From: Epiperipatus broadwayi
Taxonomy: Eukaryota; Animalia; Onychophora
DNA: 64,000 bases
Reading direction: 5' to 3'
NCBI GenBank assembly: GCA_028023455.1
Contig: JAQFVV010000008.1
Location: forward strand, 16,678,001 to 16,742,000
The notes under the pieces were generated by a model. That model was not told the DNA's origin. It searched no databases and worked only from the letters and a program-made list of their open reading frames with translations. Within the stretch, counting starts at the first letter, position 1; every line of letters begins with the position of its first letter. This document shows, one piece after another, positions 6,113-53,300 of this stretch. The translations under genes and the position numbers were made by a program.

Positions 6113-6863
6113 TATCAGTAAAGTTGCTTAAAAAAAAAAATGATCAAAAAAAAAAATATTTTACTTAGGGTTAGTAATTACGGTATACGATTAACAAAAT
6201 TTACAAAACATTTGGTTAGTATAAAGACTATATACAAAAAGAAAAGGAAAATGTTGACTATCGCCTACCTAAGGACCATTTACGTTTACACCCCTCCCCA
6301 CAAGAGTTCTATTTTATTTTATACATTTTATTTTTACACACGGCATGACAAGCAAATTTTATAAATTATTTATTTAAATAAGGTTGCATTGAGATAAATA
6401 TGTTTTAAGAAATAATGGGTTTAAACGTGTATATTTGCAGCACAATTATAAACACCACCAACTTATTTATGACTGATTAAAATGCTTAAATAGGATTACA
6501 CTGAAGTAAATTCCCAACAGTACTCATCGTAAGGTACCACATTTCGATCATAAACTTACGTGGCTGTGCGCGCCTATACACGTTAAAGCATAATATATAT
6601 CAACAAAAAAAAAAACATATTTATTGCAACCTTTTGACTTTTTTTTTTTTTTTTTTAACAAAAATTAGTTTTTAAAATTTTTTCACTTTCTTGTGTTTAA
6701 TATATATGCGCAATTTCTTTTACTGGCAGAGCTTTTATAAGATTTAAAGTATACGACTTATGTAAACAGATAAAATATTTCATTTTGACAAAATTTGCTC
6801 AGGGTATTTGTGGTTTATTAAAGATCGGCCCCAGATTGGGAAAGCCAGTTGTAATATGTTGCT

Positions 6864-7640
6864 ATAGATCGGTTACATAGATTTCAACGGTTAAACACAT
6901 TTCAAAGTAAACATAAACGATCAAAATACAAACTTATTGATTACTGACAATTGCGGAGGAAAATTTATACGTAACCCAATAGTATTCACCATAAGATACT
7001 TGCATTGTCACCAATAACTTAAAAGACATCCGAATAAATACATTTTTGATACTCACCGTAAGGTATCATTATTTATCGAATGTCTAATATATTTTGATCA
7101 AATATGGAAACGCAAAACATAGTTAACCAATAAACAATCCATGCAAGCGTCTATAAACAACTTAAATTTAATGCATTTCTATTTAGGGTCGAGTATGAAT
7201 AGACCACATAAATTTGCTTTTGAAAATAAACATTCTATCCCTATTTAACCTTAGGTTAAAATTCGTAGTCAAACTGGCATCAATTCATCTGATATATCGA
7301 TGTATTCAATGTAATAAAATACGGCAGCACAAAAAGTTAAGAGAAGAAATTGCTTCTCATGAGATAGGAATATTACATCTATCTGCAAAGAAGAGCAATA
7401 AAACAAAAAACTCCATAGAAAGGAACTGCGGTATCCGACTTATAATTCCTTCCATAGGCAAACGGAAGTGTGCGGCATATGAAGCGATTCTGCCCGTAGC
7501 GAATCAATATTACATCTACTAATCACACCAATATATCCAATCCATTGACCCAATTTAACCACGAAACAAATAACCTAAGATTACCCTCCCCTAATATAAC
7601 TTTACAAATCTATACAGCCATTCACGCCCGACTTAAGTTT
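6864..7640 (+). repeat. Third, partial direct copy of the A arm inside the central spacer
   Basis: Near-identical to about 4367-5145. It accounts for the duplicated 102-aa ORFs at 4717 and 7214. Confidence 0.9.
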
Positions 7641-7703
7641 AACATTTATATAATTATTTTAACGAAAAACAAAAATCATGTTTGTATGTTAAAAAAAAAA
7701 AAA

Positions 7704-9901
7704 AAAACGAGCACAGACGTTCGTTACATTGTTTTTTTTTATTTTATTAAACATGAAAGTAAATTAAAAAGTTCACATTTAAAAAATTTTCTTTAAGAAT
7801 TAAAAATTGAAATTAAATATCATCTTAAACTCGTATATGTTAAATCGCACAGATAATGAAAAATTATTAAAATAAAACTTTATTAAAGAAAAAGTAAAAT
7901 TAAACAAAAACTTAAAAAGATTTAGAGATAAAAATATATCTTTGATTTGGAAAACAGGTTAATTAATCAGAAATGGAAATGATTGTTAATTAGTTAAATG
8001 TAAACCAGCCTTGGGCATTTAAATGTAAAAACATCGGTCAGAGAGGAAAACAATAGAAACTTTTAGCAAATGAAATAAATCCATTGGGAAATCGGACCTC
8101 AACAAAAAGGATCATCGCATCGATGACGTAATGTAAATGCAATCCTTCAAATGAATATAAAAGGACATGGTTGAAAATTATTAGGGAGTGATTGATTATT
8201 GATTATTACGATGTGACTATATGTAGTAGTACGGAGTTGGAGGTGATGGAATTGACAGACGCACTGTCAATTCTGTCAGCTGTTAAAGAAAGGAGAAATG
8301 AACTATCGTTTTCTACATTGAGGACTAGTTAAAGCAAAAATCTCCGGATGGATAAATAAATCGGCCTTCAGAATATTAACCTCTTTAGGACGGCGTGGGA
8401 ATTTACGTTCATGGCAAGCAACGGATAAAGTTGGACGTTTTAAAAATCGTAAGAACTTTATATTCACTTGAAACAATAAGAACTCTAAATTTTAAAACTT
8501 TTTAGTAAATAATGCAATAGAATCCTATCTGACCAAACTAAATTCTTCATTAATAATGTTATTTGATGTATTTGTTATTTATTTATTTAAAATCATTTCC
8601 ATTTATTTAACTTTGTTCTTTAAGTTTATTTATGATTTCTGTTTTCCGATGAATTAAAATATATCAATGTTAAACTTAAGTCGGGCGTGAATGGCTGTAT
8701 AGATTTGTAAAGTTATATTAGGGGAGGGTAATCTTAGGTTATTTGTTTCGTGGTTAAATTGGGTCAATGGATTGGATATATTGGTGTGATTAGTAGATGT
8801 AATATTGATTCGCTACGGGCAGAATCGCTTCATACGCCGCACACTTCCGTTTGCCTATGGAAGGAATTATAAGTCGGATACCGCAGTTCCTTTCTATGGA
8901 GTTTTTTGTTTTATTGCTCTTCTTTGCAGATAGATGTAATATTCCTATCTCATAAGAGGCAATTTCTTCTCTTAACCTTTTGTGCTGCCGTATTTTATTA
9001 CATTGAATACATCGATATATCAGATGAATTGATGCCAGTTTGACGCTCTTCCGATCTGCCTAAGGTTAAATAGGGATAGAATGTTTATTTTCAAAAGCAA
9101 ATTTATGTGGTCTATTCATACTCGACCCTAAATAAAAATGCATTAAATTTAAGTTGTTTATAGACGCTTGCATGGATTGTTTATTGGTTAACTATGTTTT
9201 GCGTTTCCATATTTGATCAAAATATATAGACATTCGATAAATAATGATACCTTACGGTGAGTATCTAAAATGTATTTATTCGGATGTCTTTTAAGTTATT
9301 GGTGACAATGCAAGTATCTTATGGTGAATACTATTGGGTTACGTATAAATTTCCCTCCGCAATTGTCAGTAATCAATAATTTTGTATTTTGATCGTTTAT
9401 GTTTACTTTGAAATGTTTTTGACCGTGAAATCTATGTAACCGATCTATATTCAACATTATAAACAAGCTTTCATAAATTTATCTGTGCGAACTTAATTAA
9501 AATGTAAAATTAGAATATAATAGTAATTAAATGTAAATTAAAATCTAAGGTAAAATAAAAAATAATGTTAAATAGTAAAATGTAAACTAATACTAAAATA
9601 ATTTTAAATCTTATATATATGTGCATAAATAAAATGTTTGTATGCTAATTACTGGCAGTGGCTTATTTTATTTATTTTTTTAATGTTGAAATCTAATTAG
9701 ATAAGATATGATATTATTTAATCTCTGCTATTCCACTGAGCTAGTGACATGGGCTAATGACCGGAATCAAAATTTAAAAAAAAAAATTTTTTTTTTTTTT
9801 GACTTATGTATCTGCCTACTTTATAAATTTTTCTAGGTTCAAATGCCTAGATGGCGCCCTGTAGTGCAGTTTACGTAAGTCGCCTTCTCCGGATCATTAC
9901 A
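7704..9901 (-). repeat. Right (inverted) arm of element A
   Basis: Reverse complement of 3914-6110. Its inner TGTAAC end is interrupted by a poly-A run at about 7690-7707. Confidence 0.9.
9042..9057 (+). other. Illumina TruSeq adapter remnant (assembly or polishing artifact)
   Basis: GACGCTCTTCCGATCT equals the 3' end of the TruSeq universal adapter. It replaces TACGAATTTTA, the sequence expected from the left arm. Confidence 0.85.
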
Positions 9902-10868: not shown

Positions 10869-13800
10869 AATTAATTGATTGTTTCATTTTGTATTTACAT
10901 TTTGGATCTAAATATTTTAAATTGTTCTTTTAATTATTTACTGCTAATGTGTTAAAATTTTATATTTATGATTAACTTTACTTTTTAGATTATTATTATT
11001 TAACTCACATAAAAAGGTTTAGTTTGATATTAATTTAAATCAAATGTAATTTATGCAATATATATATATGGTATCATGTATAAAGCATAGATACACCAAC
11101 AAGTATGTAAGCAAACACATGCATTACACAACAGATAATATATAATTGGTTAATGCACACACAAAAAATAAATGAATTAGTTTATAGGTAAATATAAGAA
11201 TATCTTGGAAATAGTGAATTGCATAAAAGTATTAAAATAATTTTTCCACTTAATTTACAATAAAATAACCAAAATCCTTAAATTGTGCATGTTGTGCTAG
11301 ATTCAAATATTGTTTTTTTCTGTCATCTTATCTAAGATGTTACAATGGTAAATGAAAAATTGTTTTTGAAATGAAATAAATACAATTGCATTAACAAAAA
11401 CAATACCATCTCAAGGTTACAATCACATAATATATAAATCAATAAAAATATAGACTTCTTTTTCTAATAAAAAACTATCCTCTTGAAAATATTTTCTTTG
11501 ACGTAGGCTCATGGCATGGGCCTTCATTAACTACATACAGTAAAAACTAATAATATCTTTATAACAAGGTTCATCAGATATAGCAAGGCTATGTTATCTA
11601 CTTCATGTGGAGAATTATAAAATTTAAATGATTTCAACATTTATTTTTATCTTATATATGCTTCACAAAACTCTATCTTGTTTGTGGGCTGACTTTCAGA
11701 AAATATAATTATAAAACTTCAAACCTAGGAAGATAGTGCTATAAGAATATTTTCTCCTCAAATAAAACACAAATTTACAGTTAATAATAAATCATCTATA
11801 TAGTTCTCATTAAGTTATAATGTGAAAGCAATTCACCATAACACAGCTATCAAATAGCACATTACAATTATAGCTTGGTCACTTTTTAAAATAATAATTT
11901 AAAAATATTAATATCTTTAACTCATTTGAATTGCTTGATAAAATCATATATGCAATCATGAGATTAATAATATATAAACATTTTTGATATCTAGATCCAT
12001 TACAACATTATGCTGTAATAGATTTAATTTCTTCATAAAATGTATTTCTAATTTTAATTTATTATACTAATAAAGTCTTATTTTAAGATTTTTAATTTTT
12101 TAATAAGTTAGTTTATCACTTATATATTTTTTATGAAGGAATATATTTGTAATTACATTTTAGAAAACATTGTTAAAACTTTTAATTAGGCGAAAATATA
12201 ATGCCATGACAATTATTAGCATGTGATTAACTAGAGTCGACTTCAAAGCCATAAATTTTACTTGGTATTTATGTATTAGTCTGGACACCAAGATTGATTA
12301 CGGTAATTTCAATTATTTTAAATGCATCTGTATAAAGTGTATTACGATAAGAATTGTTTTGTTTTCTTTAATTTTTATAAAAATACCCAAATTATATATT
12401 GTAAAAAAATAAAATCGCATGATTAACTGAACCTAGTGTTGATCTTTAAAATATTTCAATTATCTTGTCAATTACTCCAAAGATCAGGTGACATTCGAAA
12501 ATCAAACAGCAAATAAACAGAACAGTTCTGAACAATTGACAAAACTGAGTTGTTTATTTGATCAATTTTATGTTTAGTACTTATTATTTTTTTAAAATAA
12601 TGTAAACAAAACAATTCTTATCATAATAGCCTTTATACACATGCATTTAAAATAATCGAAATTACCATAATCAATTTTGGTGTTGAGACTTACTTAAGCA
12701 TTTTTTAGTTTAACTAAAACCATTCTCTTAAATAAGTGGAATTATAAAGTAGACAATATTTAATACCTTCTTTGTTGTTATTGTTTTTTCATTTTAACTT
12801 AGTTCACTCATAGTCTGCTTCCATTATGCCTATAAATTTTCTGATTAAAGTTTGGTAATTTTAAATTCTTAAATCACACAACAAATTTATTAATTTTGTT
12901 ATCAGTGTAAGTGATTTAAGAATTTAAAATGCAGTTAACATTTAAAACAGATCTACTTTTCCTTTATGTTTCATTACAATAAATCTTATTAGTTTGCCAA
13001 ATTAATAAATTATATACAAATTTAAATAAAACATTAAAAGTATATTTATAATACACATATTATAAAAATTTAATTCTAAGAAGAAAAAAAAACTTGAGAA
13101 TTTATGATATGCAGAATATTCTTTAATAATGAATTCACTTAGCTTATTTCCATGTTGTTGTTTTTTTTTTTGGTAAACATATATATGATTGAAATGTAAT
13201 TTTATATATTGCTAAAATTCTTTAAATTTCATAGGATATGATAAAAGTATTGACACCCTTATATATTATCCATGAGATTATAGATTTTTTAATAATTTGA
13301 TATGAATTATTGGTTTACAAGCAAAAGTATAGAGAGCTTATATTTTCAGAATCATAGATGAGATAGATTCAAATAGGTAGCTTTCATCTGAAGGAAATGT
13401 CTTTGGAATGTTTAATGAAAATGAACCAATATATAATATTTTATTGTTCATTAAACTCAAGTAATTTCATTATTACTGCATTGATTGCCTGTTGAATGAA
13501 GCAAATAGCTATGTAAGGAAAATTTTGTATTATTTATTCAGTCATTAAAGAAATAGAAACAAATGTTCTTAATTAAACTGTGATTGCCAATCTATGCTGC
13601 AATCCCCAACCTTCCAAGCAAAAAAATATATATATATATTTTTTTTATATAGAGTGTTTCAGAAATTTATAATTAAAATTTAATTATCAAAATTTAAGTT
13701 TTAATCTTTAATGAAAAATGAAAACATTTAAACAAAGAAGCTAAAAATGGTCAAAATAGTATTTTAACATACTCCTCCAGCCTTCTCATTACCATTTTAA

Positions 13801-15491: not shown

Positions 15492-17493
15492 CTCTAAACA
15501 TTAGTGAAATTAATTAAGTATAACTATTAACCCCTCATTCACCATCTCTTAAGATTATATCATGATCATTCCTATATTTATTCCTTCTATAAATACTTGA
15601 AACACAGGTTATATTTTCTGATCATCATCACTTTTGGAACAATAATCCTTAAGATCACAGTACACTGGTAGTTTTACATTGAGAGCCCTGGCAATGACTA
15701 GAGTTTCAGAATGGCATCTTTGTTTACAGAAAAACTATCAATGCACACAATCAAATAAGAACTGACTTCAATTTTATAATCTCTTATTTCACCTTCAATA
15801 TTCCAAGCAGTATCTCAGTTCAGAGAATAGACTTGTACTCGGTTCAAATGATGGACTGGTAAAATGAATAATAATATATATATATTTGATTAATTTAAAT
15901 AATATTAATCAAAAATTAAATTGAAGATAGTTTATATTTTTTTAAAATTCAATGAGTAAAAATTAAAAAGTCTAAGGCCCAGAGTCTTTCCAGAAGCTCC
16001 TCATAAAGAAACAATAAAAAAGAGAGTTTGAATAATTTTCTTTTCCTTTAGCTAAAATAGCTAGTTATACATATACTGACTACTATTTGGTAGTTAGTTG
16101 GATGGATACCTGAAAGAAAAATCTTATACTTGATTGTAATCTAAAAAAATTTACTTGGTCCAAATTTAAATTGAAGTTGTAGACATGGTCTGTGTGTGCA
16201 CTATAAATCTGTACCATGAGGCCGATTTAAAGACTAAAAAAGTGTTATAAGTTATTGTTTTTTTATGACAAATAAAAAATAAATAATTCTCTGTTATTGT
16301 CATACTAAAATTATTTTTTTTTTTTTTTTAAAGATGCAGCCAATGTTCTCCAACGTGAGCACTGCTATAAAAAACATTTACTTTCTCTTCAATTTGTTTC
16401 TAATAAAGTAAGCATTTTTTTTAATCTTTTCTTTTTTATTTAATAAATTGCAAAATATAAGTTATAGTATATGTATATTCAAACAACAGTTTGCAATTTA
16501 CAAAATGTATAAATATATTTGATGGGCTCAAATTATGGTCCGAATTTCTTCTAATTTTGTATAAATGTAAAATAAATCATGTCCCTCAAACATATATCTA
16601 AAGACAAAGAACACAAATTTAATGATGAGTTTTACAGTAACTATAATATAAACCAATCCATTATCTATAAATACATCACATTCTGGTTATTTCAAATTTT
16701 GTGCTGCATCTGCATTTTTTAATTTTGTTTTTAACAATTTTTTTTTTTTCTGGAAGATTTTAACCTCATGTAGCTATCCAATTTGTCAATTATATTCTCT
16801 TTCAGAACTGTGTCAATATTGTATTTCATTACATTGCATTTCACATCATTTTTACAATGTAAACAAAATTATTGCATTCACGAATACCATATTTAAGTTT
16901 ACCATAAAATATTTTTTATTGAAAGTCTGTTATGATTCATTCAATTCACATGCTCATTCTAAAGAAGATACTCTTACAATGTAAATATACTTTTATAACA
17001 ATAGATTCATCATGACATTTGATTTCTCTTGCTTTTTTAATTGTTAAAATTTATTTTAATACCTGAATTATGTAATTTGATTAAAATGATAAATGAAAAG
17101 TGCATTTAGAAGAATGATGAAGTGTGACTCAAGAACTATATTAAAACAATTTCTAGTTCAGGTAAATAAAAATAAATCTCAGATTTATTGAATTGATCCC
17201 TTAGGCTCAATTTATTATTCTGGTACTTGGAACATCATATGATTGCCCAAAAATACTCACCATATGATTATATTAATTCTGTTTTATTATCATTTTACAT
17301 TTTTTATCTGTTCTTTGCTTAATTCTTCCAATGATTTTTGATGATAAATGTGTCAAGCTGTGGCCATTCAATTTTTTATTAAAGAAAATAATATACTCTC
17401 CATTAGATATTTTTAGATCACTGCATACAGCTGTATTATTAATTTTTCTGTTTTTCGAATCAAGTCATTTTTCACATTTTATTTATTATCTTT

Positions 17494-17729
17494 TTCATAT
17501 CTGCTTTTTCAAACCAAATTGTGCAAACGCTTTTTGCGAGTGTTAAATAATAAATGAATACCCTCTGACCCATACAAGATATAGAATTTATGCAGCAATA
17601 AAAGGATTAAAAGGATTCCTTTTATTGCCGCATAAATTCTATATCTTGTATGGGTCAGAGGGTATTCATTTATTATTTAACACTCGCAAAAAGCGTTTGC
17701 ACAATTTGGTTTGAAAAAGCCGATATGAA
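17494..17729. repeat. Near-perfect 236-bp palindrome (hairpin MITE-like)
   Basis: Arms of about 113 bp with about 2 mismatches around a loop of about 10 nt (TTAAAAGGAT). No clear TSD. Confidence 0.95.
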
Positions 17730-20336
17730 TGTGATTACAATTGTATACAGACCCTATAAAAAATAAATGCTGATTTATTATCTTTTTATAAACAATGATA
17801 AAATGTAAATAAATCATTGTTATTTTCCCATTAAGCAACCACAGAACTGTCAATCTCCCTACTTCCAACAAAGTAATAAATAATTTGTTTCAGAAGCTTT
17901 TTATTTGCATAAATTATTATAAAACCAAATAGTATTAAAAGAAAATATTTGGTTTAAAAACTATTTGTTGATTGATGATTGAAATGTAGTAAATTCTCCT
18001 AAATAATCATCATCTGCAGTTGCAAAGTGCATCTGAATCAAGTGCAAAAAGAAATTATAACACTGCAAAAAGAGCTTTCTCAGTATACATCATTCTATGT
18101 CATATCATCAGTTGAAATCTTGAGAAAATTATTAATTATGAACTTTCCAAGTCAATGGAATAACACTTACATTATTATAATTTAAAGACTTCTGTTTCAA
18201 GTAACAATATTGAGTAGATTTTTACCTTTCTTTCACCTTGAACATAGTTGACAATCTAAAGATAGTGTGAGAAACAAAAAACTACTCATCAAAAAAGATA
18301 AAAGGTCCATTAACTAGAATCCTATTACTCCAGCACATAGTTCCAATTTCAATGGAAGAACTCATTATTGTATAGGAGAATAATCTTATTGTTTTTTTTT
18401 TTTTTTTTACAAATTAAAAAAACAATATGTTAGGCTTTAAATATCAAATAGGCAACAAAATTATATACCACATATATAATGGAGCTATTAAATGAGTGTC
18501 TGGTAATATAACAGATAAACAAGTTAAAGAGACTTTCATTATCCAAATCATTGAAGGGTTTTTACCTTCTCAGCACAGATATCAACTGATACTTGATCAT
18601 GGAAGTAAAGTTAACCTAGAAGTTTTTAGTCTAGTCATCACTGAAGAAACAAGTCAAGCCATCATCAAGGGAAATAGCAATAAATATTTATAAAATCAGA
18701 AGGCATCACAACTTTTAGTATTTTTATTAAGGGAAAGGAATACTGCAACCTTTGTGTAATTACTTTTAGCCAATCACAGAGCCTAAATTAAAGATTTGAA
18801 ACTAATATTTTTAACAATCATGTTATCAACTAAAATTACAGCATAGTAATATATATTTCTTGCTATAATCTATGCTTTTCATTTAAATAAAATGCCAAAC
18901 TTAGACTACTCACTACCATTACATATAATCATTCTAAGTGGGCATTGTTGCAAATGATCATAACTTGACTAGATGATGGTAAGCTATCATCTTAAAATCG
19001 GTTACATTCTGGCAACTAATATTGTCTATAGAGCTACTGACATTGTAACAGGCTCTTCTGAAACACTATATTTACTATCATTAATTGAATATAAATGATA
19101 ATCATTCACTAGTTTAACTTGGTTATCTCTCAAGTAACCCAAACATCACTGTATAAATAAGAATTGAATTGTACTTGCATTATTAACTTTTGTTTCAAAT
19201 AAACATTGGTTGGTTATAAAATAATTCATATGTATGAGCATACATTATTTGATTTAAATAAAATATAAATTCTCAGAAATGTGCAATCATAAATGAACAA
19301 ATCTAAGTCTGAAGCTAGAAATTCAGACTTTAAATCTGCTTCATCACTTTTTAAAGTGCTAAAATTAAATATTGTTAATAATCAGATACACACCTTTTCA
19401 ATGAAATCAGTAGGCAGAGTGACAGCCTTTAGAGCTCTAGTCTTTGAATCACAGCTCAAGTTGTTTGTTTCTAATGCTTGAATTTTATATGAACTCCAAA
19501 GTAACAAATCATTCAATTATCAATATTATTAGTATTTATTTTTATTTTGAGATGATAATTGAGCCACTATATTTACAAGAAGGTATTATTGATTTTTGTA
19601 AAATTTAGATCACTAAAAAAAAGTTTACTTCAAAAGCTATAATTTAATTATTATTAGTTATATAGTAGCATTTCATTCACCATATATGTTGTGCATTTTT
19701 TGATGTGAGTAAATTAATATGCAATTTTTCAAAAATATATTATTATAATTAAAATTTAATCATTATAAAATTATTCTTGCTATTTAGCAGGCTAATATTT
19801 AAAATGGTATTCTATTTTCTCTTCTCTAATCTTTCAAATGTATAGTTTTTATCTTCACACATAGCAATTACTTAATTACACCTAAATATCTACGCATTAT
19901 TTAATAAACTTGTAAATGTACTGAATGATTCTATTATGTGGAGTCAGTTAATTTATATAATTTTCTGTTATCTGCATTATATGTAAAGAATATAATTTGT
20001 AGCAAGTGAATTTAAAAAATATTATTTACCAAAGTCCTCAATACAAGAAAAGGGAAAGGAAAAGTGATTTGCAAACCCCAGGATTAAGTGAATAGCTTAT
20101 ACCAAAGACTCTGGACCATGTTAAAAAAGTTAAAAAGTCAAATATAAACTTGTCTGATTCCAATGCACGCGATACATCAAATGAGCCAGTTAATATAATA
20201 GAGGTAAGTCATGTCCCAATATAATTGTTTATGATAAATCTCTAGAATTGTCACATGAGAGCCTAATATCTCTAGATAGAATTATATAAATAAATATATT
20301 TCTTGTATTATTTATATTTATACACTAAATAAGACA

Positions 20337-29577: not shown

Positions 29578-31249
29578 TTGGAGAAAAAGACATGGATAGC
29601 AAGTGAGATTGCAGATAAGAATGGAAGGATGTTAACTGATAGTAATGATATATTAAAAAGATGGGAAGAATATCTTCAATGTCTGTTTAGTAGAGGAAAT
29701 CATGTAATTAATTATGAATTTGAAAATGAAGATGTTGAAATAGATGATAGAGGTATGGACATATTGCTGGATGAACAATCGCACAAGTGAAGAATAGTAA
29801 AGCTGTTGGATTTGATGCAAATACCTATAGAATTTTTGAGAGAAATGGGAGAATTTACTATGAAGGAAATAGTTGGACTTTGCAATTTGATATATAATAG
29901 TGGAGTTTGGCCTGAAGATTTTTTAAGAACTAGAATGATTCCAATTGCTAAAAAGAATAAAGCTGCTAAATGTGAAGAGTATAGAACAATAAGTTTGTTG
30001 TCTCATACTTCTAAAGTTTTATTGAGGATTTTAACTCAAAGGATTTATGGGAAGGTAGATTATTATATTGGTGAAGAACAGTTTGGTTTTTGGAAAGGGA
30101 AAAGCACAAGAGATGCTATTGGTATTGTTAGGACAATTGTGAAAAGATATATGGAAAGAGATAAAGGAATTGGTATATGTTCTGTGGATTTAGAAAAGGC
30201 ATTTGATAGAGTAGTCTGGAATAAAATGATGTTCATCTTAAAAGATAAAGGAGTATTTTGGAAAGAAAAATGATTGATTTGGATTATGTATAATGGTCAA
30301 AGGATAAGAATTAGATTTGTGAATAATGTGACTGATGAAGTGAATATAGAAAGTGGAGTTAGGCAAGGGTGTAGTGTGTCGCCTGTTCTGTTTAATATTT
30401 ATTTAGAAGATATGCTAAATAATTATTTGGGACTGTAGAGGAGCAGATGTTGGAGGGAGAGTAATAAAGTATTTAAGATTTGCAGATGACATGGCTCTTA
30501 TTGCTGAAGAGGAAAAGGGTCTTTAGAATATGTTGAATAAATTGGAAGGATGTATGGCATATGGAATGAAGATTAATATTGAAAAGACTATGTGTTTATG
30601 GATAGGGAGAGATGCAAAAAGACTGCAAATTGGAATCTGTGATGACATGGTTCAACAGATGAAGGGATTTAGATATTTGAGTAGTTGTTTGAGTGAGGGT
30701 GGAAGAAGTCAAGATGAAGTTAAAAGAATAGCATTGGCAAAGGAGACATTTGTAAAGAGAAAGAATATAATTTGTGGACCTTTGGAAAGCGGAATGAAGA
30801 AATTAATTATATGTTATGTGTGGAGTATATTAATGTATGGTTGTGAGACATGGACATTGAGTAATAGAGTTAAGAAACAATTGGAAGCTTTTGAGATGTG
30901 GACATGAAGGAAAATGGAAAAAATCAGTTGGATGAGTAAAATAACAAATGAAGAAGTTTTGAAAAGAGTAAATGAGGAAAGAAGAATATCAGAGAGAGAA
31001 AGAGAAACTGTATTGGATATATATTGAGAAAAGATTATAGTTTAATGAAAGATATTTTGGAGGGAATGGTGAGTGGAAATAAAAAGGATGGAAGAGATTG
31101 ACATTATTGGATGATATAAGAGATGGGAAGACTTATGTGGAATTGAAGAAATGGGCAAGGAAGTGAATAGAATGGAAGAATGGATGAATTGATGTTGTGA
31201 CTAATCTCTGGACCTGTCTATTGGACAGAATACTATTGATTGATTGACT
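29578..31249 (+). mobile_element. 5'-truncated RTE-clade LINE (RT to 3' tail), pseudogenised
   Basis: CEEYRTISLLSHTSKVL, QFGF.KGKSTRDAI, VDLEKAFDRV, GVRQGCSVSPVLFNIY, FADD and YGCETWTL are present. It ends with a 3' stem-loop CTGTC-TATTG-GACAG and an (ATTG)n tail. Confidence 0.95.
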
Positions 31250-31716
31250 ATGATGGACATACTTATTAAATTGCCATGTTTTATATCATTATAATATATA
31301 ATTATTAGAAGATTTTCATAAACTTTAAAGATGTAGATATTAAACTTATAATGAGAATTTCTAATTATTTATCTAAAAATATTTTTTCTATGATGTAACC
31401 AAGCAAAGAAACAATTAAAAATTGGCATTGCAAAAGCTGAGATCATATTATCTAGTAATATTTTCTGCCTGTCTTGAATTTTTGGTTTGGAAAGAAAATA
31501 CTATTATTATATAAATGTGATTTCAGTTTGCAATTTTAGTTTTTGATTGCTTATTTGTCTGGATATATCATATTGAAAAATATCTAGATAAATATTTAGA
31601 AATTTCCATTATAATTTCAATATTTACAACTTTATATTTAATTGTATACTAAATTTGCTACATAATTACAATATATCTTATTCATACACTAAATAAAATA
31701 CTTTTTTTTTTTGTAG

Positions 31717-32599
31717 GTTGAGTTAGAAGACAAAATAACAATTAGTAATGAAGATGGACAAAAGCTAGCTGTAGCTAATGAGATGTCATTTGATTCTTGC
31801 TCTATAGAAATTATGAATAGTTCTGATGTTAATCAAATTATTACTGACAACTATGATAGTATACCTATTGACAAATATTACTGGAATTTCTTAATTAATA
31901 AAAATTCTAATGCTCTGATTCAGTTGTTTATTGAAATGTGTTTACAAATTGATAATGCAAGTGATAATGTATTACAACTTAAGTTTAAAAATGTAAGTGA
32001 TCGGCAGATGAAAGACAAATTTGAAACTTTTTTTACTCAGAATGCTTCCAAGTTTTTTGAAATAAATGAATCCAAAATTGAAAATGATAATTACTCAGAA
32101 ACACAGATTTCTAATAATCACATATATAATACTACTTATGACAAATTAGAGAATGATTCACACATTGTTTCTAATACTTCACAAAATATTAATTCTTCTA
32201 AAACAGTATTTACGTATTACGAAGATATCAAAGTAACTATTTATCAAGGAAATATTACCAAAGAAGTTGTTGACATCATTGTTAATGCAGCTAATACTAT
32301 GCTGGATAATTGCTGTGGAGTAGCTAAAGCTATTTTACATGCAAGTCAAGATGACAGTATTCAAATAAATTGTGATAAATACATTATAAAAAATGGAAAG
32401 AAAGGATTAAATGTTGGTTCTATTTATTCTTCAGTATCTGGTAAACTTAACTGCAAAAATATTTATCATGCTGTGATTCCAAGATGGAATCTATATGGGG
32501 TTCAGAGTATCAATATATTAGGAGATCTACTGTACAATTGTTTTTTGAAGGCAGATAAATCTAACATGAATTCCATTGCTTTACCTCTTATAAGTTCAG
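31717..32599 (+). CDS. Internal exon encoding a macro domain (PARP14/PARP9/PARP15-like protein)
   Basis: Polypyrimidine-tag acceptor in frame with the 31783 ORF. Macro motifs: VTIYQGNIT, DIIVNAAN, GVAKAI, IYHAV, SIALPLISSG. GT donor after the SSG glycine at 32600. Flanking exons were not identified. Confidence 0.9.
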
Positions 32600-32659
32600 G
32601 TATTATTAAATTTATTATTAAATATATTAAATTTATTAAGTGCCAGCAGATAATATAAT

Positions 32660-33011
32660 AATAACATGAAAGGCTGAAACTTTTGACCGTTGCACTTTAA
32701 AAATGCTTATGTGACAGCCAATCAGATGTAATAATGACTACACGAGGAACTCTCAATTCAAGAACACCAGCCAAAAATATGAGAATTAAATGTGGTATTT
32801 TAAGCTTCATGCTTTTTGTTCAGAATGCTTGAGTCTGGCTTATTTATATGTAAATTTAAGTAGAGAAGAATGTGGGTTCCATCTTTTTTTCATATTTCTG
32901 GCTTGTGTTTTTGAATTGAGAGTTCCTCGTGTAGTCATTATTACATCTGATTGGCTGTTACATAAGCATTTTTAAGGTGCAGCAGTCAAATGTTTCAACC
33001 TTTCACATTAT
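32660..33011. mobile_element. MITE with about 120-bp TIRs just downstream of the macro exon
   Basis: GAAAGGCTGAAAC...CAGCCAATCAGATGTAATAATGACTACACGAGGAACTCTCAATTCA has a matching reverse complement at about 32890-33008. A TA TSD is possible. Confidence 0.85.
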
Positions 33012-34028
33012 TAAATTTATTATTATAATTATTTTTATTATATTTTAAATTGATATGCAGTGATAACTTTAATTCAATAATAATATTTTTTTAGTTAATT
33101 TTTTTTTTTTTAAAAAAAAAGATACTTGTTTCCAATGACACATTTTGCAAATATGGGTGTATAAGAATTTCTGCTATTCTAAGCCTTTTTTTTTATCTAA
33201 AACTATACCAATTTGGGCATCAATTGGAATTTTGGTAAATTTTGACATAAGATTGTAACAATTATAAAAAAATAAATATAATGATAACTTACCTAGATAA
33301 AGGAATAATAAATCATGTCTCTATATATACTTATTTATATATTTCTAAAATCCATTAATGGCCACAAAGATAATAGTTTATTGCAAAATCTTTTAATACT
33401 TTACCATCAAACAAAGTACCATGACTTTCTAGCTTTCTTTCTTCGTTGGCATTATGAATAATTATTTATTCTATTCCAGAGCCATTTTAGAGTATTTTTC
33501 TTAATGTGGCTGATATATAAAGTAAGCTATGGTAAGAAAGTCTTATAATATTTTGGCATGAATTATTCTGTGACGGAATAATCAAAATTATGTACAGATA
33601 GCATGTAACTAATGTCTTTAAGATATGTAATTGCTAACATAGTATCAGACTTATATAGTTATTTAACTTAACTGATATGTGTTTAAAACTATATAGTATT
33701 TGAATTTCAAGTCATTAGCTTGAATAATATAAATAAATAAAAGGGCTGCTGTATATGCAGGTACAAATCTAGTGCTGCTTATTGATGAAAGCCAATAAAC
33801 CAGAAAATAATTCGGAGATAAGGATGTAGACTATCATTTGGCATCCATTTCTTAAATTTATATACATGGCTTTGGAGCAGCAAATAGAATAAATTACTAT
33901 TTCAAATATTTTACTACATAAATATCTATACACTTTCTAAGAAAAGATTACATTTTATTTGACAATTTAATAAATAATTTGTTGAGTAATGTGTTTGACC
34001 CAGAGTCATAATCATAGCATCAAACTCA

Positions 34029-46761: not shown

Positions 46762-48125
46762 ATATATATGTCAATCTGTTATTTTTTATAAAAAAAAAAA
46801 ACGAATTTAAGTTTGTTAATATTATTAAGTGATATTACGAATGGTGATTGTTTAACAAAGAATACAAAAGATTTTTAATCATTTTATCAACAAATAAATA
46901 TAAAAACTAGATTGTTTTTTTTTATATTTAAATTGAGAAATAATTTTTTAGCAAAATAAAATTTTAGTTTGGTATTCATGGCAAAATAACTTTTTTCAAA
47001 AAATAATTATTTTACAGCTGTAAATGGGAAACAGTTTAATTACAATTATTGCACTAAAGGAGCATTTGAAATGACTAAAATTTAATTTCTATATTATTTA
47101 AGAGATGGGGGGGGGTATATAAAATAGCTTTTTATTAATATTTCAAAATATCATATCTTTTTTATTCTTTATGCATTGATTGTATGTGTACATATGTAAT
47201 ATTTTAAAAAAATACACCTTTTATGATCACTTTTTACATACATTAATTTTTATTTATTTATTGTCATTTTTTAACAGTTTTGATCAGAGGTATAATATTC
47301 AAATATATATGAGTACATAATTAATATATTTTATATTTTAATGGACAAGATTGTAACGGTCATATTTGTACATTCACACAACAAAATCTAGAATCCTAGC
47401 AAATTATACCAAGGCTGATTTAGAGGAGGGGTTGAGACCTCGAATCAGATCGCACCTCAGCTCCTCCACCAACACTCCATGACTTACTACCCTATGAATG
47501 ACATATATGAGGCTACACTCTGAGTTTCTTAATTCACGTGCCAGTAGTAGCAAAGGATGGAACAAGAGACTCAGGAAAATTAACTAACATTTTAAATCAA
47601 CACACACCTATATGGCTGGCTAGACAATGCATACATCAATAGTTAATGCTAGTATTAAGAAATTTAACTAAGATTTGGGATGGATTACGAATGACATGCA
47701 ACACTGATTATAATTTAATATATTTTAATTAATAAATATAGATTAAGTAAATATGAGTGCACTGAATGACACACGCAGGTGTAACAATGATGAGCAAGTT
47801 TGAGAACAGAATCTCATCTAATGCACTATAGTTCAAAACAGTTTATTACAATTTTAATAATCTACGGTCTATTTATGCCTTAATTTTACCATGCCCTATC
47901 TATTATGTTTGCGACGGTTAAGTTGGTGCAAGAAGGATGATTTATCACCATAACATTTAATAAATGGTCATTTAATAACAATGAGCTGCAATAGGCGCTC
48001 TATGCAGATTATATACGTACCAAACCAAATTACATATTCAGATCAATGCTGAAATATTATGTTACATTATGGAGGGTTGAACTGGAGCTTTGTAGTATGA
48101 CTTCAGATATTATGACATTATATAT

Positions 48126-49771
48126 TGTAACCGTTTATTCCGGCGCAAACACATATATATGTGATACACGTTTATTATGTATTTTAAACTTAAGTTTTGC
48201 TTTTTTATTTAACAGAAATTTATAATATGAACACATATATGTGTGGTTGGTTTTGCGATGCCCTCTAATTACTCGCCCAGCATATTTATGAGCATCAATA
48301 ATGACCTCGCGCCAATCTTACCTACGAATAAATAAGAATTATGCTGGGAGAGGATGAGTATCTATTTCTGGTGGTTAGAGCTTGTATCTCTGGCTAGCTC
48401 ACTCAGGGGTAGTAGTCGGTGACCGTGGGAAAGAGGTGGAGGGAACATATAAAAATGCACATGTAGCGCATGAACTATTCATTTGCTTTCCTACTTTTTG
48501 CTTTTTAATATTATTTTAAGAAATTAACACTAACACACACAATTAAATTTATAATACTAATTAATATTTATTAATATAAAACAAATAAAACAAAACCCAT
48601 AAAATCCCAGAATTGGATATTGGTTTGTGCCCGAACAATTAAATAACCTCCATGTAAATACACTCGCACAAGTTTATAAATGCCATTCACAAAAATACAG
48701 ATCATAGCTTGAAAACAATTTCAATCAGGCATTGTCTATTAAGGCGTATACAGGGTATTATTTCAACATTTTCTTCATTTACTTTAACCCTTTTACGCAT
48801 TATTTAATAGGACGTGCTTTCATTCAAAATAGTTATTATCACTTACGAAAATGTTTGGTTTATCTCACCCAGGTGTAGATTATTAGCTGTACGATTAAAA
48901 TATTTCTTTCTTTGGTCAAATTCCATAAGGCAATCAATGGCATCCAGTGAATGCTGTTCTTTTCATGGTTTTAAGAAGGGCTTCGCTCCTACATTTACAG
49001 TGATGGTAGTCTCTCCACAGGATGGATGGCATAGCCTGGCCCGTTCTGCTCTTCTACCCCAACCTGTTCATGATTTTTCGATTATAAACTTTTTTTCTTT
49101 TTACCAACTTTTTCTTACGATCCTGCTCATGGCAGTCACAACTAATATAAGTCCTTCTCAATTCAGCTTTCTCGAATCTCCTTAATCATGCTATTGTTCT
49201 GCTTTAATTGAACCACGTGGTTTGCAAAACAAAAATCTTTTCAATACTTTTCTTTTCTTTGTTTCTCTTATCTAAGCTTAGGAATTTCCAATTTACCTTG
49301 CAATCTACACTCGACCGTTCATTGTCTATTACTTTTAACATTTTATTTTATTAATTAAAATGTCTTTGTCTCAAGATAGTGATCTGCAACTGTTCGGGTC
49401 CTTTCTTTGCAATTAATTAATTTTTTTTATAATTTGTGACATTCTTCCTTTAATCGACCATCTTGGAATATTTCTTTTTAAATTAAAATAACTTTTATTC
49501 CTTTTTACGAAATTATTACATTTACTCACTCATGCAGCAATATAAACACGCGTATAAATAAATATCAGAGCACAAACCATATAATCCCCCATCCCTCTTA
49601 TATTTCAACCTGTTTTTATTTAATTACTTAAATATATATGTATGGGCTCGCATACAAGGTCACAATGAAAAAGAACAATTTACTTAATATTATATTTGAT
49701 TTAATTAGCTACGTATGCTCGGTAGTATTACCCTCTGACTTAGAACAGGGTTTGAACTCAGGCCTGTTATA
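48126..49771. mobile_element. Solo-LTR-like element C nested in the left arm of B
   Basis: TGTAACC...TGTTATA termini with ATAT on both sides. Removing it restores colinearity with the right arm of B (cattat-atgt-attact). A TATA-like CATATAAAAA lies near 48450. Confidence 0.75.
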
Positions 49772-50172
49772 ATATATTACTAGAGAGGTGTACGTCTCAA
49801 ATTTGTAGTTACTCAGGAAATTCAGTACCAAGTACTCGGTTCAAGTGGACCATATGACTTGCTGTGAATAAATTGAACATATAGTTCGGTGATCAGAGCA
49901 CTATCTGGACCCTCCTGTTCCAGTTCTAAAGAAGAGCTGTCTGAACTAAGTAGATGGATGGCCATTAAAACTAGAAGCTCATTCATTTAAGAAACATACA
50001 GCAAAGCGTAAATGCACATATGTGCTTCCCAAAAATATATTCGCTTGCTAAATATAATATTAATTAATAACTTAAGATACGCAAAATTCTATAGTTTTCT
50101 GCAAAACTACCGCATGCCAGTTCATAATTAGCATTCTTAAAACATGCTAAAGGGATACTTTAAGTAATCTTA

Positions 50173-50364
50173 TTTATTAACCAATCTTCACAGTTTATAA
50201 TATAACTCAAAAGAGGGCTAAAGCATATCTGAGATGTAAGCAATACATATAATATGCTTTCTAACTCATTTATTAACCAATCTTCACAGTTTATAATATA
50301 ACTCAAAAGAGGGCTAAAGCATATCTGAGATGTAAGCAATACATATAATATGCTTTCTAACTCA
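50173..50364. repeat. Exact 96-bp tandem duplication in the left arm of B
   Basis: 50173-50268 equals 50269-50364. The right arm has a single copy. Confidence 0.95.
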
Positions 50365-53300
50365 TTCTTGCACTTATTAACTAATTACTTTATTAATTGG
50401 AAAACCTAATTCTAGTGACAATAATAATAATAAGCTAAACATAATAGCTTAACCAATATATTTAGGTTTTCAGAGTGGAGATTTATGTGTGTGTGTGTTA
50501 AAGAGCAAAATTACTGAATTATGAGAGAGCCTCTACTCATCTCCCCCTCAAATTTTATTCATAGAATCAATCTCTGTTCTGAATTGGGCATAGCATAAAT
50601 TATAAAATTAACATATATAAAACAAATAAGAAGGCATGACCGCAGATTAGCAAGTAACAGAATAATAACTGAATAAGTTATTATTAACAAGCATTTAGAG
50701 TTTTAGATTTTAATTTAATAGATAGGCAAGTTTACAGATATTATTTTAGCAGAATTTTAAATTATAATTTACAGATGTAAACCAGTTTTAATTATTAGAA
50801 TATATTACAGTTTAGAATTTTATGCACATTATAGATTAGTAGCTAGCTTAGCTTTTAGATAAATTTTTAGAATTATTTTTTTAAAGAGCTCTGCAGGAAA
50901 AATTTGTTACCGTATCTTTGCTGAGGCTTTTCTGTAGCTGATCACCATCATTCTTGGCTGGGCTGATCCATTCCTGATGTCTTCTTAGCAGATTAACTCT
51001 TCTCCCCATTCTTCCACCTCTATAGACCGATCTGTTGAAAGGAGAGCCTGCAAACGATATGGCCTTAGCTGCCAAACTCCATTTTCCAATCAGTCATAGT
51101 GACTGACAGCAATTACTATATCAAATTCTAAATAAGTGAACCCTTATTTCTTAAATTCTAAAACTCTAAATGCTTGTTAATAATAACTTATTCAGTTATT
51201 ATTTTGTTACTTGCTAATCCATGGTCATGCCTTCTTATTTGTTTTATGTTTATTTTATAATTTATGCTATGCCCAATTCAGAGCGGAGATTGATTCTATG
51301 AATAAAGTTTGAGGGGAAGATAATTAGAAGCTCTCTCATAATTCAGTAATTTCGCTCTTTAACACACACATATAAATCTCCGCTCGAAAACCCATAATAT
51401 ATTGGTTAATCTATTATGTTTAGCTTATTATTATTATTGTCATTAGAATTAGGTTTGCAAGTCAAAGTAATTAGTTAATAAATGCAAGAATGAGTTAGAA
51501 AGCATATTATACGTATTGCATAAGTCCCAGATATGCTTTAGCCCTCTTTTGAGTTATATTATAAACTGTGCATATTGGTTAATAAATTAGATTACTTAAA
51601 GTATCCCTTGAGCATGTTTTAAGAATGCTAATTATGAACTAGTATATGGTAGTTTCATGAAATGAAACTATCGAATTTTGCATATCTTAGGTTATTAGTT
51701 AATATTATATTTAATGTGGTGAATGTGTCTTTAGGAAGCACATACATGCATTTACGCCTTGCTTTATGTTTCTTATGGGAATGGGATTCTAGTTTTAATG
51801 TCCATCCCATCTACTTAGTCCGGACAGCTATTTAGAACTGGAACACGAGGGTCCAGATGGTTTATAAGCTGCTCTGATCACTGAACTATATGTTCAATTT
51901 ATTCACAGCAAGTCAAATGGTTCACGGGAACTGAGACTTGGTACTAAATCCCCTGAGATGCACACCTCTTTAGTAATACATATAATGCCGTAGTATCTGA
52001 AGTCATACTACAGAGCTCCAGTTCATCCCTCCATAATGCAATATAATATTTCAGCATTGATTTGAATATGTAATCTGGTTTGGTACGTATATAATCTGCA
52101 TAGAGAGCTTATTGCAGCTCATTAAGTGTGTATTAAATGATCTTTAATTAAATGTTATGGTGATAAATCATCATTCTTGCACTGATTTAACCATCGCAAA
52201 CCTAATAGGTAGGGCATGATAAAATTAAGGCGTAAATAGACCATAGATTATTAAAATTGTAATAAACTCTTTTGAACTATAGTGCATTAGATGAGATTCT
52301 ATTTTTAAACTTGCTCATCATTGTTACACCTGTGTGTGTCATTCAATGCACCTATATTTATTTAATCTATATTTATTAATTAAAATATATTAAATTATAA
52401 TCACTGTTGCGTATCATTCGTAATCCATCCCAAATCTTAGTTAAGTTTCTTAATACTAGTGTTAACTATTGATGTATGCATTGTCTAGCCAGCTATAGAG
52501 ATGTGTGTTCATTTAAAGTATTAGTAATTTAGTTAAATTTCCTGAGTCTCTTGCTCCATCCTTTGCTACTGCTGGCATGTGAACTAAAACTCTGAGTATA
52601 GACTCATATATGTCATTCATAGGGTAGTAAATCTTGGAGCATTGGTGAAGGAGCTGAGGTGTGATCAGATTCAAGGTCTCAATCCCTCATCTAGATCAGC
52701 CTTGGTATAATTTGCCAAAACTCTGTATTTTGTTGTGTGAATGTACATATATGACTATTACAAGATTGTATAATCGGGGTTACCCCCATGCTCTTAGTTT
52801 AAATCCCTACCTAGGCTTCCTAGTCTCAACCACCTAATTAACATCCTTGATATCACCCAGATTCCTTTTTTTCACAGCATGATCTAGTTCAGGGCACAAA
52901 CAAACTCAGGGTTCTTTCAACAACTTGGTTCAGTGCACCTTAGCCCTTCCTTTATACAGATTGGTATTACATTATAACTTGTAATTCTGCTCAAACATAC
53001 TATCAAATCAATTTTATTACTAGACTGACAGATTACATAGGATTTTCACTAGCCTGGGTTTAAAGCTCAGACTTCTCAAAGCAATATTCAACAAATACTT
53101 AAGTCTAGATTATTAGCTTACGGTTCTATGGTTTTAGAAATATACATTTAATTATTCATGATCATAATAGTTTATTATAATATTTAATGGAATGAATAGA
53201 TGGCATACAAGTTAATTTATAAATTAACGATTTCACTGGCCCTTACATTATTATGGATTGAAGTACTGGCAGTTTATGTATTGATATGTGCCTAAATTAC

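Follow-up and report, generated by a model that had tools for sequence, protein, structure and literature searches.

A foldback of two truncated copies of an abundant LTR-like repeat within one 4-bp target duplication in Epiperipatus broadwayi

In the stretch of the Epiperipatus broadwayi genome analysed here (the window, 64,000 nucleotides), positions 47352-52762 hold a 5.4-kb foldback, element B, with TGTAAC at both ends and the duplication AGAT on either side. Is such a structure one copy of a family of mobile elements with long terminal inverted repeats (TIRs), or an accident that befell a more ordinary repeat? The sequence-only reading of this DNA had chosen the former: together with another foldback in the window, element A, element B was taken to reflect a recurrent mechanism, that is, a class of long-TIR elements mobilised by an integrase. 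The results presented below lead to the conclusion that element B is probably an accident built from an ordinary repeat and no new kind of mobile element.

Anatomy of element B

The outer ends of element B read TGTAACGG from 47352 and ...CTATTACA up to 52762. The inverted arms of about 1.6 kb in the sequence-only reading are real: the right arm forms one piece, the left arm comes in two parts, and their ungapped blocks are 84-94% complementary, with 161 substitutions in 1,583 aligned bases (p = 0.102). Its TGTAAC-type ends and flanking AGAT copies can likewise be read directly (Table 1). The chance of a second AGAT matching, calculated from the base composition, is ~0.7%, and the inverted repeat does not extend into the flanks outside the arms, beyond a 5/7 match.

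The spacer of about 440 bp also has the reported length, but it is not foreign DNA. Most of it (~430 bp) is the left copy continuing, and it is collinear with the left arm in 29 of 29 other loci. The left copy stops at position ~2050 of the underlying repeat unit, a point beyond which family copies extend, and is followed by seven bases that differ from the next stretch of the left copy and have no clean match in the next stretch of the right arm. In short, element B consists of unit 1-2050, a 7-base filler and inverted unit 1-1612/1636, the latter limit depending on the choice of reference copy. The rest of the unit, its 3' third (~750 bp), is absent across the whole 64-kb window.

Each arm also has features of its own. 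The first part of the left copy aligns to unit 1-784 of a natural copy (locus L032, 801-3592) at 87%, and the 96-bp tandem duplication of the left arm is lacking in the right arm and in the family. In addition, the right copy carries a 16-bp deletion compared with the family. A nested solo LTR, whose relatives match it end to end at 91-95%, interrupts the left arm; once this insertion and one ATAT are taken out, the site reads as it does in the family. The nested solo LTR is younger than element B, and its family differs from that of the arms.

Overall, element B seems to be a dead, non-coding insertion. It contains only two open reading frames of at least 60 aa (123 and 64 aa), of which the longer sits inside the nested LTR and gave no match in a Pfam scan. 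Within B, ARAGORN found no tRNA, Rfam gave no match at E <= 1, ribozymes included, and no primer-site copy was found between the arms.

Table 1. Features of element B and its insertion site (positions in the window)
Feature	Position	Strand	Basis or remark
Left target-site duplication AGAT (4 bp)	47348..47351	.	read directly; same as 52763-52766
Left arm, part 1: left copy, unit 1 to ~780, begins TGTAACGG	47352..48125	+	aligned to natural copy L032 and right arm
Nested solo LTR (1,646 bp), unrelated 1.65-kb family, TGTAACC start, TGTTATA end	48126..49771	+	excision test, relatives
ATAT duplication of nested solo LTR	48122-48125 and 49772-49775
Left arm, part 2: left copy, unit ~780 to 1612	49776..50713	+	alignment to right arm, other loci, L032
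96-bp tandem duplication in left copy	50169-50264 and 50265-50360		99% alike
Stretch between the arms	50714-51150		437 bp
So-called spacer: left copy running on, unit ~1613 to 2050, final ...GAACCC	50714..51143	+
Joint filler TTATTTC, 7 bases, untemplated or ambiguous	51144..51150	.
Right arm: right copy, inverted, unit 1 to 1612-1636	51151..52762	-	1,612 bp
Right target-site duplication AGAT (4 bp)	52763..52766	.	read directly

The repeat family behind the arms and its neighbours

Both arms come from a 2.8-kb non-coding repeat (the unit) that is abundant in this AT-rich genome of 5.6 Gb. The 25-base 5' end of the unit has at least 4,234 intact occurrences genome-wide (reversed control, 0), and 16 extended copies have common sharp limits, from TGTAAC to ...TTTCA, with only a short and imperfect inverted match between the ends. 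Neither terminal direct repeats nor long inverted repeats occur inside the unit; a TRIM/LARD-type element with small LTRs inside it was rejected for want of terminal direct repeats. Among the 19 copies with both ends, the 4-bp target duplication is perfect in 13 and matches at three or more of four bases in 17, and its sequence is ATAT seven times and CCGG never. The TG...CA termini, TGTAA start, 4-bp duplication, lack of coding sequence, uniform length, thousands of dispersed copies and star-like tree are all shared with solo LTRs of the Gypsy/BEL type. We infer from these sequences that the unit is probably an LTR, now present as thousands of solo copies.

On the other hand, the unit differs from Gypsy/BEL-type LTRs in that searches gave no paired copy, interior, polypurine tract or primer site for it. 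Each of the 45 other copies examined is a lone 2.8-kb unit, and the flanks of these copies contain neither a second copy nor a common internal region. A 10-purine run precedes only 2 of ~4,000 intact 5' ends, which is the chance level, and no primer-binding-site-like sequence was seen 3' of the unit end in the 3' flanks listed. Consequently, a paired-LTR parent element is not seen. Two same-strand pairs of the unit, 10.3 kb apart on C3 (1133361/1143671) and 12.4 kb apart on C4 (7743330/7755689) and known by coordinates only, are within chance expectation. The recurrent A-rich context in the 3' flanks of unit copies is a satellite-like host repeat, and the open reading frames downstream of one copy (L042) belong to an unrelated LINE (zf-RVT).

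Element A (3914-9901, with an ATAT duplication) lies 43 kb from element B. The two show no BLAST similarity at E <= 1e-3, in agreement with the earlier statement that they are unrelated in sequence. Direct pairs of family A are spaced 2.9-3.0 kb start to start, and the family nested in B has seven direct pairs, four of them near 4.07 kb start to start. Because of these direct pairs at regular spacing, the two families, both TGTAAC-ended, are recognised as true LTRs.

A single foldback with sister arms

Among the scored matches, a probe across the joint of element B spans the joint only at the B locus, and at least 37 other copies hold both halves in the normal order. This search of the genome took in the best 40 matches per query, so rare sister foldbacks could escape it; among the best 40 arm matches, no opposite-orientation pairing appears besides that at the B locus. 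In the ~160 Mb listed, four close pairs of the unit in mixed orientations were found against ~1 expected, one of them convergent (on C1, 7.4 kb span). A foldback or long-TIR family, which would require several sites with the same joint, was rejected, and as far as the sequences go the foldback architecture of element B is a single case and no family trait. The proposed class of mobile long-TIR elements was therefore not upheld: the arms of element B come from an LTR-like family whose other examined copies are single, the joint is confined to one locus among the scored matches, and B is without coding capacity. The recurrence of such structures in this genome is supported, element A being in the same window.

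In the tree, the left and right arms are sisters (support 100/99), with a common stem of 0.018 and tips of 0.055 and 0.064, compared to a family median tip of 0.075. Each arm has its nearest relative in the other arm, ahead of every other genome copy compared (best 40 matches and tree). The arm differences (~10%) are evenly spread, with no identical run longer than 48 bases, which argues against recent gene conversion; gene conversion as the source of the kinship was rejected.

Origin of element B

The best explanation, to which we give about an even chance of being right, is that a retrovirus-type integrase once inserted a faulty retrotransposon copy with an LTR start at either end, and that the result, element B, has been dead ever since. 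The source would be an LTR retrotransposon whose 2.8-kb LTR persists as thousands of solo copies. During reverse transcription, DNA from the normal LTR start TGTAAC would have been extended for ~2,050 bases and then joined to inverted LTR positions ~1,620 back to 1, either by a strand switch or snap-back or by end-to-end union of two unfinished DNA copies, and the seven odd bases would mark the joint. The product would carry the same LTR start at either end. The integrase of the element may have accepted this pair as termini. Concerted integration of the ~3.7-kb piece at AGAT, in a single step, would then have given the 4-bp duplication. Later, the arms would have diverged by 10%, a solo LTR of a younger family would have entered the left arm, and 96 bp would have been duplicated there. 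Since element B is without genes, primer site and a normal right end, it would never have copied itself again.

The exact 4-bp duplication outside identical TGTAAC ends, of the kind seen in the repeat family, points to a one-step insertion by a retroviral-type integrase, and this part of the sequence-only reading is retained. Retroviral integrase in vitro carries out concerted insertion of identical-end pairs with the right duplication size (PMC2615609). Judging from the sequence, the joint may well have been made during reverse transcription, and integrase may have done the inserting. A simple snap-back hairpin has one open end, and thus a further step would be needed to give a two-ended duplex; nothing in element B shows a trace of this step. 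Strong-stop DNA is known to prime its own extension in a side reaction of reverse transcription, which nucleocapsid protein suppresses. In such fold-back products, as in B, the strand doubles back to form an inverted repeat and a loop; however, they have been described in vitro as non-integrating dead ends, whereas B is integrated with a proper target duplication.

An alternative is that two copies from the same source inserted in opposite orientations at the same AGAT site, forming a long palindrome whose unstable centre was then lost, from unit 2050 in the left copy to unit 1620 in the right copy. In Drosophila, LTR retrotransposons in inverted tandem, formed by double insertion at a palindromic ATATAT motif, have been reported (McGurk and Barbash 2018, PMC5932611); this was the only paper that literature searches for inverted LTR pairs flanked by target duplications brought up. 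The 2.8-kb family similarly favours ATAT-like palindromic targets. Re-use of the site would also account for the AGAT beyond either end, the two limits of the deletion roughly mirror each other, and the 7-base filler fits end joining. Nevertheless, this account is unlikely. It requires two rare events and one large deletion, AGAT is not the preferred target of the family, and the closeness of the two arms to each other is matched by no other genome copy. Moreover, a genome-wide pattern test of low sensitivity gave no instance of two undeleted copies meeting at one site across 4 bases, whether tail to tail or head to head, so that the undeleted intermediate was not found. Element B resembles the Drosophila tandems in its inverted copies and AT-rich palindromic kind of target, but both of its copies are cut inside the LTR with seven odd bases between them, and one 4-bp duplication brackets the whole. 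A single ordinary copy altered later by a replication or repair template switch is very unlikely. Replication template switching typically yields inverted duplications with short fillers, as seen here, and the arms parted somewhat later (tips ~0.06) than the burst of the family (~0.075). The AGAT match would then be coincidental (~0.7%), the inverted copy would stop exactly at unit base 1 before AGAT recurs, the original 3' end of the unit must have vanished without trace, and the flanks stand outside the inverted repeat beyond the 5/7 match. The sequence-only reading had named, as what would overturn it, a lack of other duplication-flanked foldback copies together with arms from a conventional LTR family that underwent a local inversion. 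Much of this applies, since the scored matches gave no second foldback and the arms do come from an LTR-like family, but no conventional paired-LTR form of that family was seen beside the 45 copies examined; a local inversion was rejected as a poor fit, because the duplication abuts both outer ends exactly and the window contains none of the 750 bp missing from the 3' side of the unit.

The explanation nearest to the original idea is that the unit is a non-autonomous cut-and-paste DNA transposon of the Ginger2 type, mobilised by an integrase-like transposase, and that element B is a foldback with two left ends, produced by faulty gap repair and then moved. Ginger1 and Ginger2 have terminal inverted repeats of ~40-270 bp with TGTNR at both ends and 4-bp duplications at CCGG/CCGT (Ginger1) or AT-rich RTATAY (Ginger2) targets (PMC2836005). 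The autonomous partners of such elements encode an integrase-like transposase and no reverse transcriptase. The unit shares the TGTNR-type start, the 4-bp duplication, the AT-rich target and, presumably, the integrase-type insertion chemistry of Ginger2. Its duplications, mostly ATAT and never CCGG, exclude Ginger1 and fit Ginger2 and LTR elements equally. An imperfect terminal inverted match of ~15/23 bases (manual count) also favours this origin, as does the failure to find a paired-LTR copy, polypurine tract or primer site (45 copies; ~4,000 5' ends). However, the unit family has no transposase gene, no inverted repeat links the unit ends in the 50-180-bp range of Ginger2, and the 3' end read inward is TGAAA rather than TGTNR. 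The copies are uniform in length like solo LTRs, two sister families with TGTAAC starts, also in the window, have been proven to be LTRs, and no second foldback copy appears among the scored matches. Taken together, a Ginger2-type origin is quite unlikely.

Compared with solo LTRs, element B differs in being two truncated copies tail to tail with one duplication in common. Two other classes were rejected. DIRS-like elements have no target-site duplication and carry tyrosine recombinase and reverse transcriptase genes, whereas B has a 4-bp duplication and no genes. Polinton/Maverick elements have 6-bp duplications, long terminal inverted repeats, a length of 15-20 kb and polymerase and integrase genes, whereas B has a 4-bp duplication and is 5.4 kb long and non-coding.

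Implications

Long inverted repeats of this size can make a site prone to breakage or give rise to hairpin RNA. Mu killer of maize is a natural inverted partial duplication of a DNA transposon that could yield a long hairpin RNA. Element B is likewise an inverted duplication of a mobile-element end, potentially transcribable into a hairpin; it differs in that Mu killer derives from a DNA transposon. If transcribed, the 1.6-kb hairpin might conceivably have served to set off silencing of the LTR family from which it came.

The inverted repeats of Ginger elements have been speculated to derive from two LTRs in opposite orientation, a route from LTR elements to Ginger-type transposons (Bao, Kapitonov and Jurka 2010, PMC2836005), and B shows that opposite-LTR layout. 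If such structures were confirmed to recur in this genome, they would bear on the origin of inverted-repeat, integrase-mobilised DNA transposons from LTR elements. It is a long shot that foldbacks like B form a thinly spread and unrecognised class that supplies the starting material when an LTR retrotransposon turns into an integrase-driven cut-and-paste element; if true, DNA with inverted LTR starts at its ends would be inserted by integrase and also mobilised by it again. On the favoured reading, element B offers a clean in vivo case of retroviral-type integrase insertion of two identical LTR starts with a normal 4-bp duplication. With their recurrence confirmed, the genome would be a natural record of reverse-transcription accidents, which would show the positions of strand switches and how often their products integrate.

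Anatomy of element B

Re-reading of the window bore out every feature that the sequence-only reading had described for element B, the foldback at 47352-52762 (arms, ends, AGAT duplication and spacer); what it overlooked is a nested insertion and a 96-bp tandem duplication, both in the left arm. In the repeat search of the window, the inverted repeat consists of two collinear pairs of blocks that are 84-94% complementary. The arms are 437 bp apart, and the right one measures 1,612 bp. Once the nested insertion and one ATAT are taken out, the sequence at the site is exactly that of the family. The tandem duplication is missing from the right arm and from B's family, and it is recent, since its copies are nearly identical.

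Features of the window, with the halves of element B in coordinates of its 2.8-kb repeat unit
Feature	Window position	Description
B left end	47352	TGTAACGG
B right end	52762	...CTATTACA
B target duplication	47348-47351 and 52763-52766	AGAT, directly outside both ends, read from the sequence
B inverted blocks	47345-48123 vs 51980-52769; 49835-50713 vs 51151-51935	repeat search of window
B left half	ends at 51143	unit 1 to about 2050, ending ...GAACCC; comparison with family copies
B joint filler	seven bases after 51143	TTATTTC
B right half		inverted; unit 1612-1636 back to 1, varying with the reference copy
Nested insertion splitting B left arm	48126-49771	solo LTR, 1,646 bp, TGTAACC...TGTTATA; own ATAT duplication
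Tandem duplication, B left arm	50169-50360	96 bp; copies 99% identical
Element A	3914-9901	ends TGTAACGATCC and TGTAATGATCC; ATAT duplication
Family-A LTR 3' end	6087-6113	small palindrome, TGTAACGAACG to CGTTACA, just ahead of interior
Reverse transcriptase-domain ORF	29806-30273	inside region 29806-32658
Macro-domain ORF	31783-32658	291 aa
High GC skew	30001-32000	0.505, unusually high
Short hairpin-like inverted repeats	17483-17740; 32659-33013; 12278-12690	arms 104-134 bp, spacers 10-205 bp

The window, G000:C8:16678001-16742000, has a GC content of about 27%, and reverse transcriptase and Macro domains were found among its ORFs; the source genome is that of an animal, large, AT-rich and unlike human (own-genome searches covered an assembly of 5.6 Gb in 18,588 contigs). 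The short hairpins look like MITE-type or SINE-dimer elements.

The repeat unit behind the arms

The right arm yielded 7,283 first-look candidates in the whole genome, the best 40 of which match it at 77-85% identity, mostly over its full length. In 29 of 29 fetched loci, the sequence of the B "spacer" continues collinearly after the arm. In 16 copies that were extended to 10 kb, the repeat has the same two sharp boundaries, TGTAAC at the start and ...TTTCA at the end, some 2.8 kb from each other. Where both ends could be read (19 copies), the 4-bp duplication is perfect in 13, matches at three or more bases in 17 and is ATAT in 7. The 25-base 5' end of the unit occurs 4,234 times genome-wide (reversed control, 0). 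Neither internal terminal direct repeats nor long inverted ends were found in the unit, none of the 16 extended copies is accompanied by another, in either orientation, within 6.4 kb, and the flanks of 45 copies showed no interior in common. The arms are thus members of a non-coding, high-copy unit whose insertion makes a 4-bp duplication and which resembles a solo LTR.

About 7 of roughly 45 readable copies, including loci L030 and L042 (G000:C12401:11675597-11685596), share an A-rich context inside an approximately 85-bp satellite-like repeat; the AGCR duplication there has a poly-A stretch on one side and, on the other, GGAACC leading into poly-A. The context represents a hot spot for insertion or else a composite amplified at a later time.

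A maximum-likelihood tree that includes both arms and 23 copies of the family groups the arms as sisters (support 100/99) with a common stem of 0.018 and tips of 0.055 and 0.064, against a family median tip of 0.075; the foldback formed in the later part of its family's activity. Between the arms, 161 of 1,583 sites differ (K2P 0.111). These differences are distributed evenly, with no identical run longer than 48 bases, so the kinship of the arms comes from a common origin and not from recent gene conversion. The nested LTR, 91-95% identical to its relatives, is therefore younger.

Comparison with the other TGTAAC-ended families

The pair test identifies two other TGTAAC-ended families in the window as LTRs: in family A, direct pairs have a start-to-start distance of 2.9-3.0 kb, and the nested-insert family gave seven direct pairs among its best 40 matches, with a distance near 4.07 kb in four. 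The test is therefore able to detect pairs where they exist, and for B's family it found none among the best 40 of 7,283 candidates. Elsewhere in the genome, copies of the nested LTR, 91-95% alike, form direct pairs, most of them with the spacing of about 4.07 kb, which implies that the LTR element is small and non-autonomous, with about 2.4 kb of interior. A run of 10 purines immediately before the unit 5' end occurs twice genome-wide, at chance level, and no primer-site-like sequence was seen in the listed 3' flanks. The unit has LTR-type termini and duplication, and we call it solo-LTR-like, a likely but unproven identity by analogy and from its features. As the chief alternative, it could be a non-autonomous DNA transposon of Ginger2-like type; Ginger2 has in common with it a TGTNR start, a 4-bp duplication and an AT-rich target (PMC2836005). 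The unit lacks the terminal inverted repeats of 50-180 bp by which Ginger2 is defined.

BLAST gave no similarity between elements A and B, in agreement with their earlier description as sequence-unrelated, and B comes from a different and older family. An inverted family-A LTR pair on another contig (G000:C147:2103435-2107739), known from coordinates only, has its TGTAAC ends facing 4 bp apart, which mirrors the arrangement of A and B.

Origin of element B

Family copies extend beyond both break points of B, and the absent 3' 750 bp of the unit was not found elsewhere in the 64-kb window; when inserted, B would have been about 3.7 kb. Among the best 40 candidates scored, a 401-bp probe across the joint matches through it only at the B locus, and a joint-spanning copy should rank near the top of these. 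In at least 37 other copies, the two probe halves follow the ordinary order of the unit; they lie about 240 bp from each other and match opposite strands of the probe. Similarly, the right-arm search (best 40 of 7,283) gave no opposite-strand match pair on one contig besides that of B. Among 100 copies listed, a single further locus is a candidate for the arrangement seen in B, a pair of convergent 5' ends 7.4 kb apart (G000:C1:21301645-21309088), known from coordinates only.

An exact duplication flanks two identical unit starts, which means that the inverted pair, or its precursor, entered by the insertion chemistry of its own family. An in-place inverted duplication is improbable, as it takes the AGAT match to be coincidental, and the calculated chance of a second AGAT at the local base composition is about 0.7%. 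The account we prefer, to which we give about an even chance, is that B is mis-made retrotransposon DNA with an LTR start at both ends, inserted by integrase. A strand switch or snap-back would have occurred once synthesis had run about 2 kb from the LTR start, or two unfinished copies may have been end-joined, and integrase would then have inserted the two-start product in one concerted step. In vitro, retroviral integrase inserts pairs of identical ends with a duplication of the correct size (PMC2615609); the snap-back route, however, needs a further step to gain the second open end, and its mechanism is hypothetical. It is unlikely that two copies went into one site in opposite orientations and the centre of the palindrome was then deleted: for Drosophila, inverted tandems of LTRs at the motif ATATAT are on record (PMC5932611), but a genome search of low sensitivity for undeleted same-site junction patterns found none. 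Slightly more doubtful still is that B derives, as a foldback, from a Ginger2-like DNA transposon, given the terminal repeats missing from the unit.

From the foldbacks A and B, a class of long-TIR integrase-mobilised elements had been proposed. With the joint present only at B among the best 40 candidates, the evidence does not support a new class of mobile elements with long TIRs, although the recurrent integrase-mediated process contained in that proposal is reasonable; B itself is a single, decayed, non-coding composite of an ordinary LTR-like repeat.
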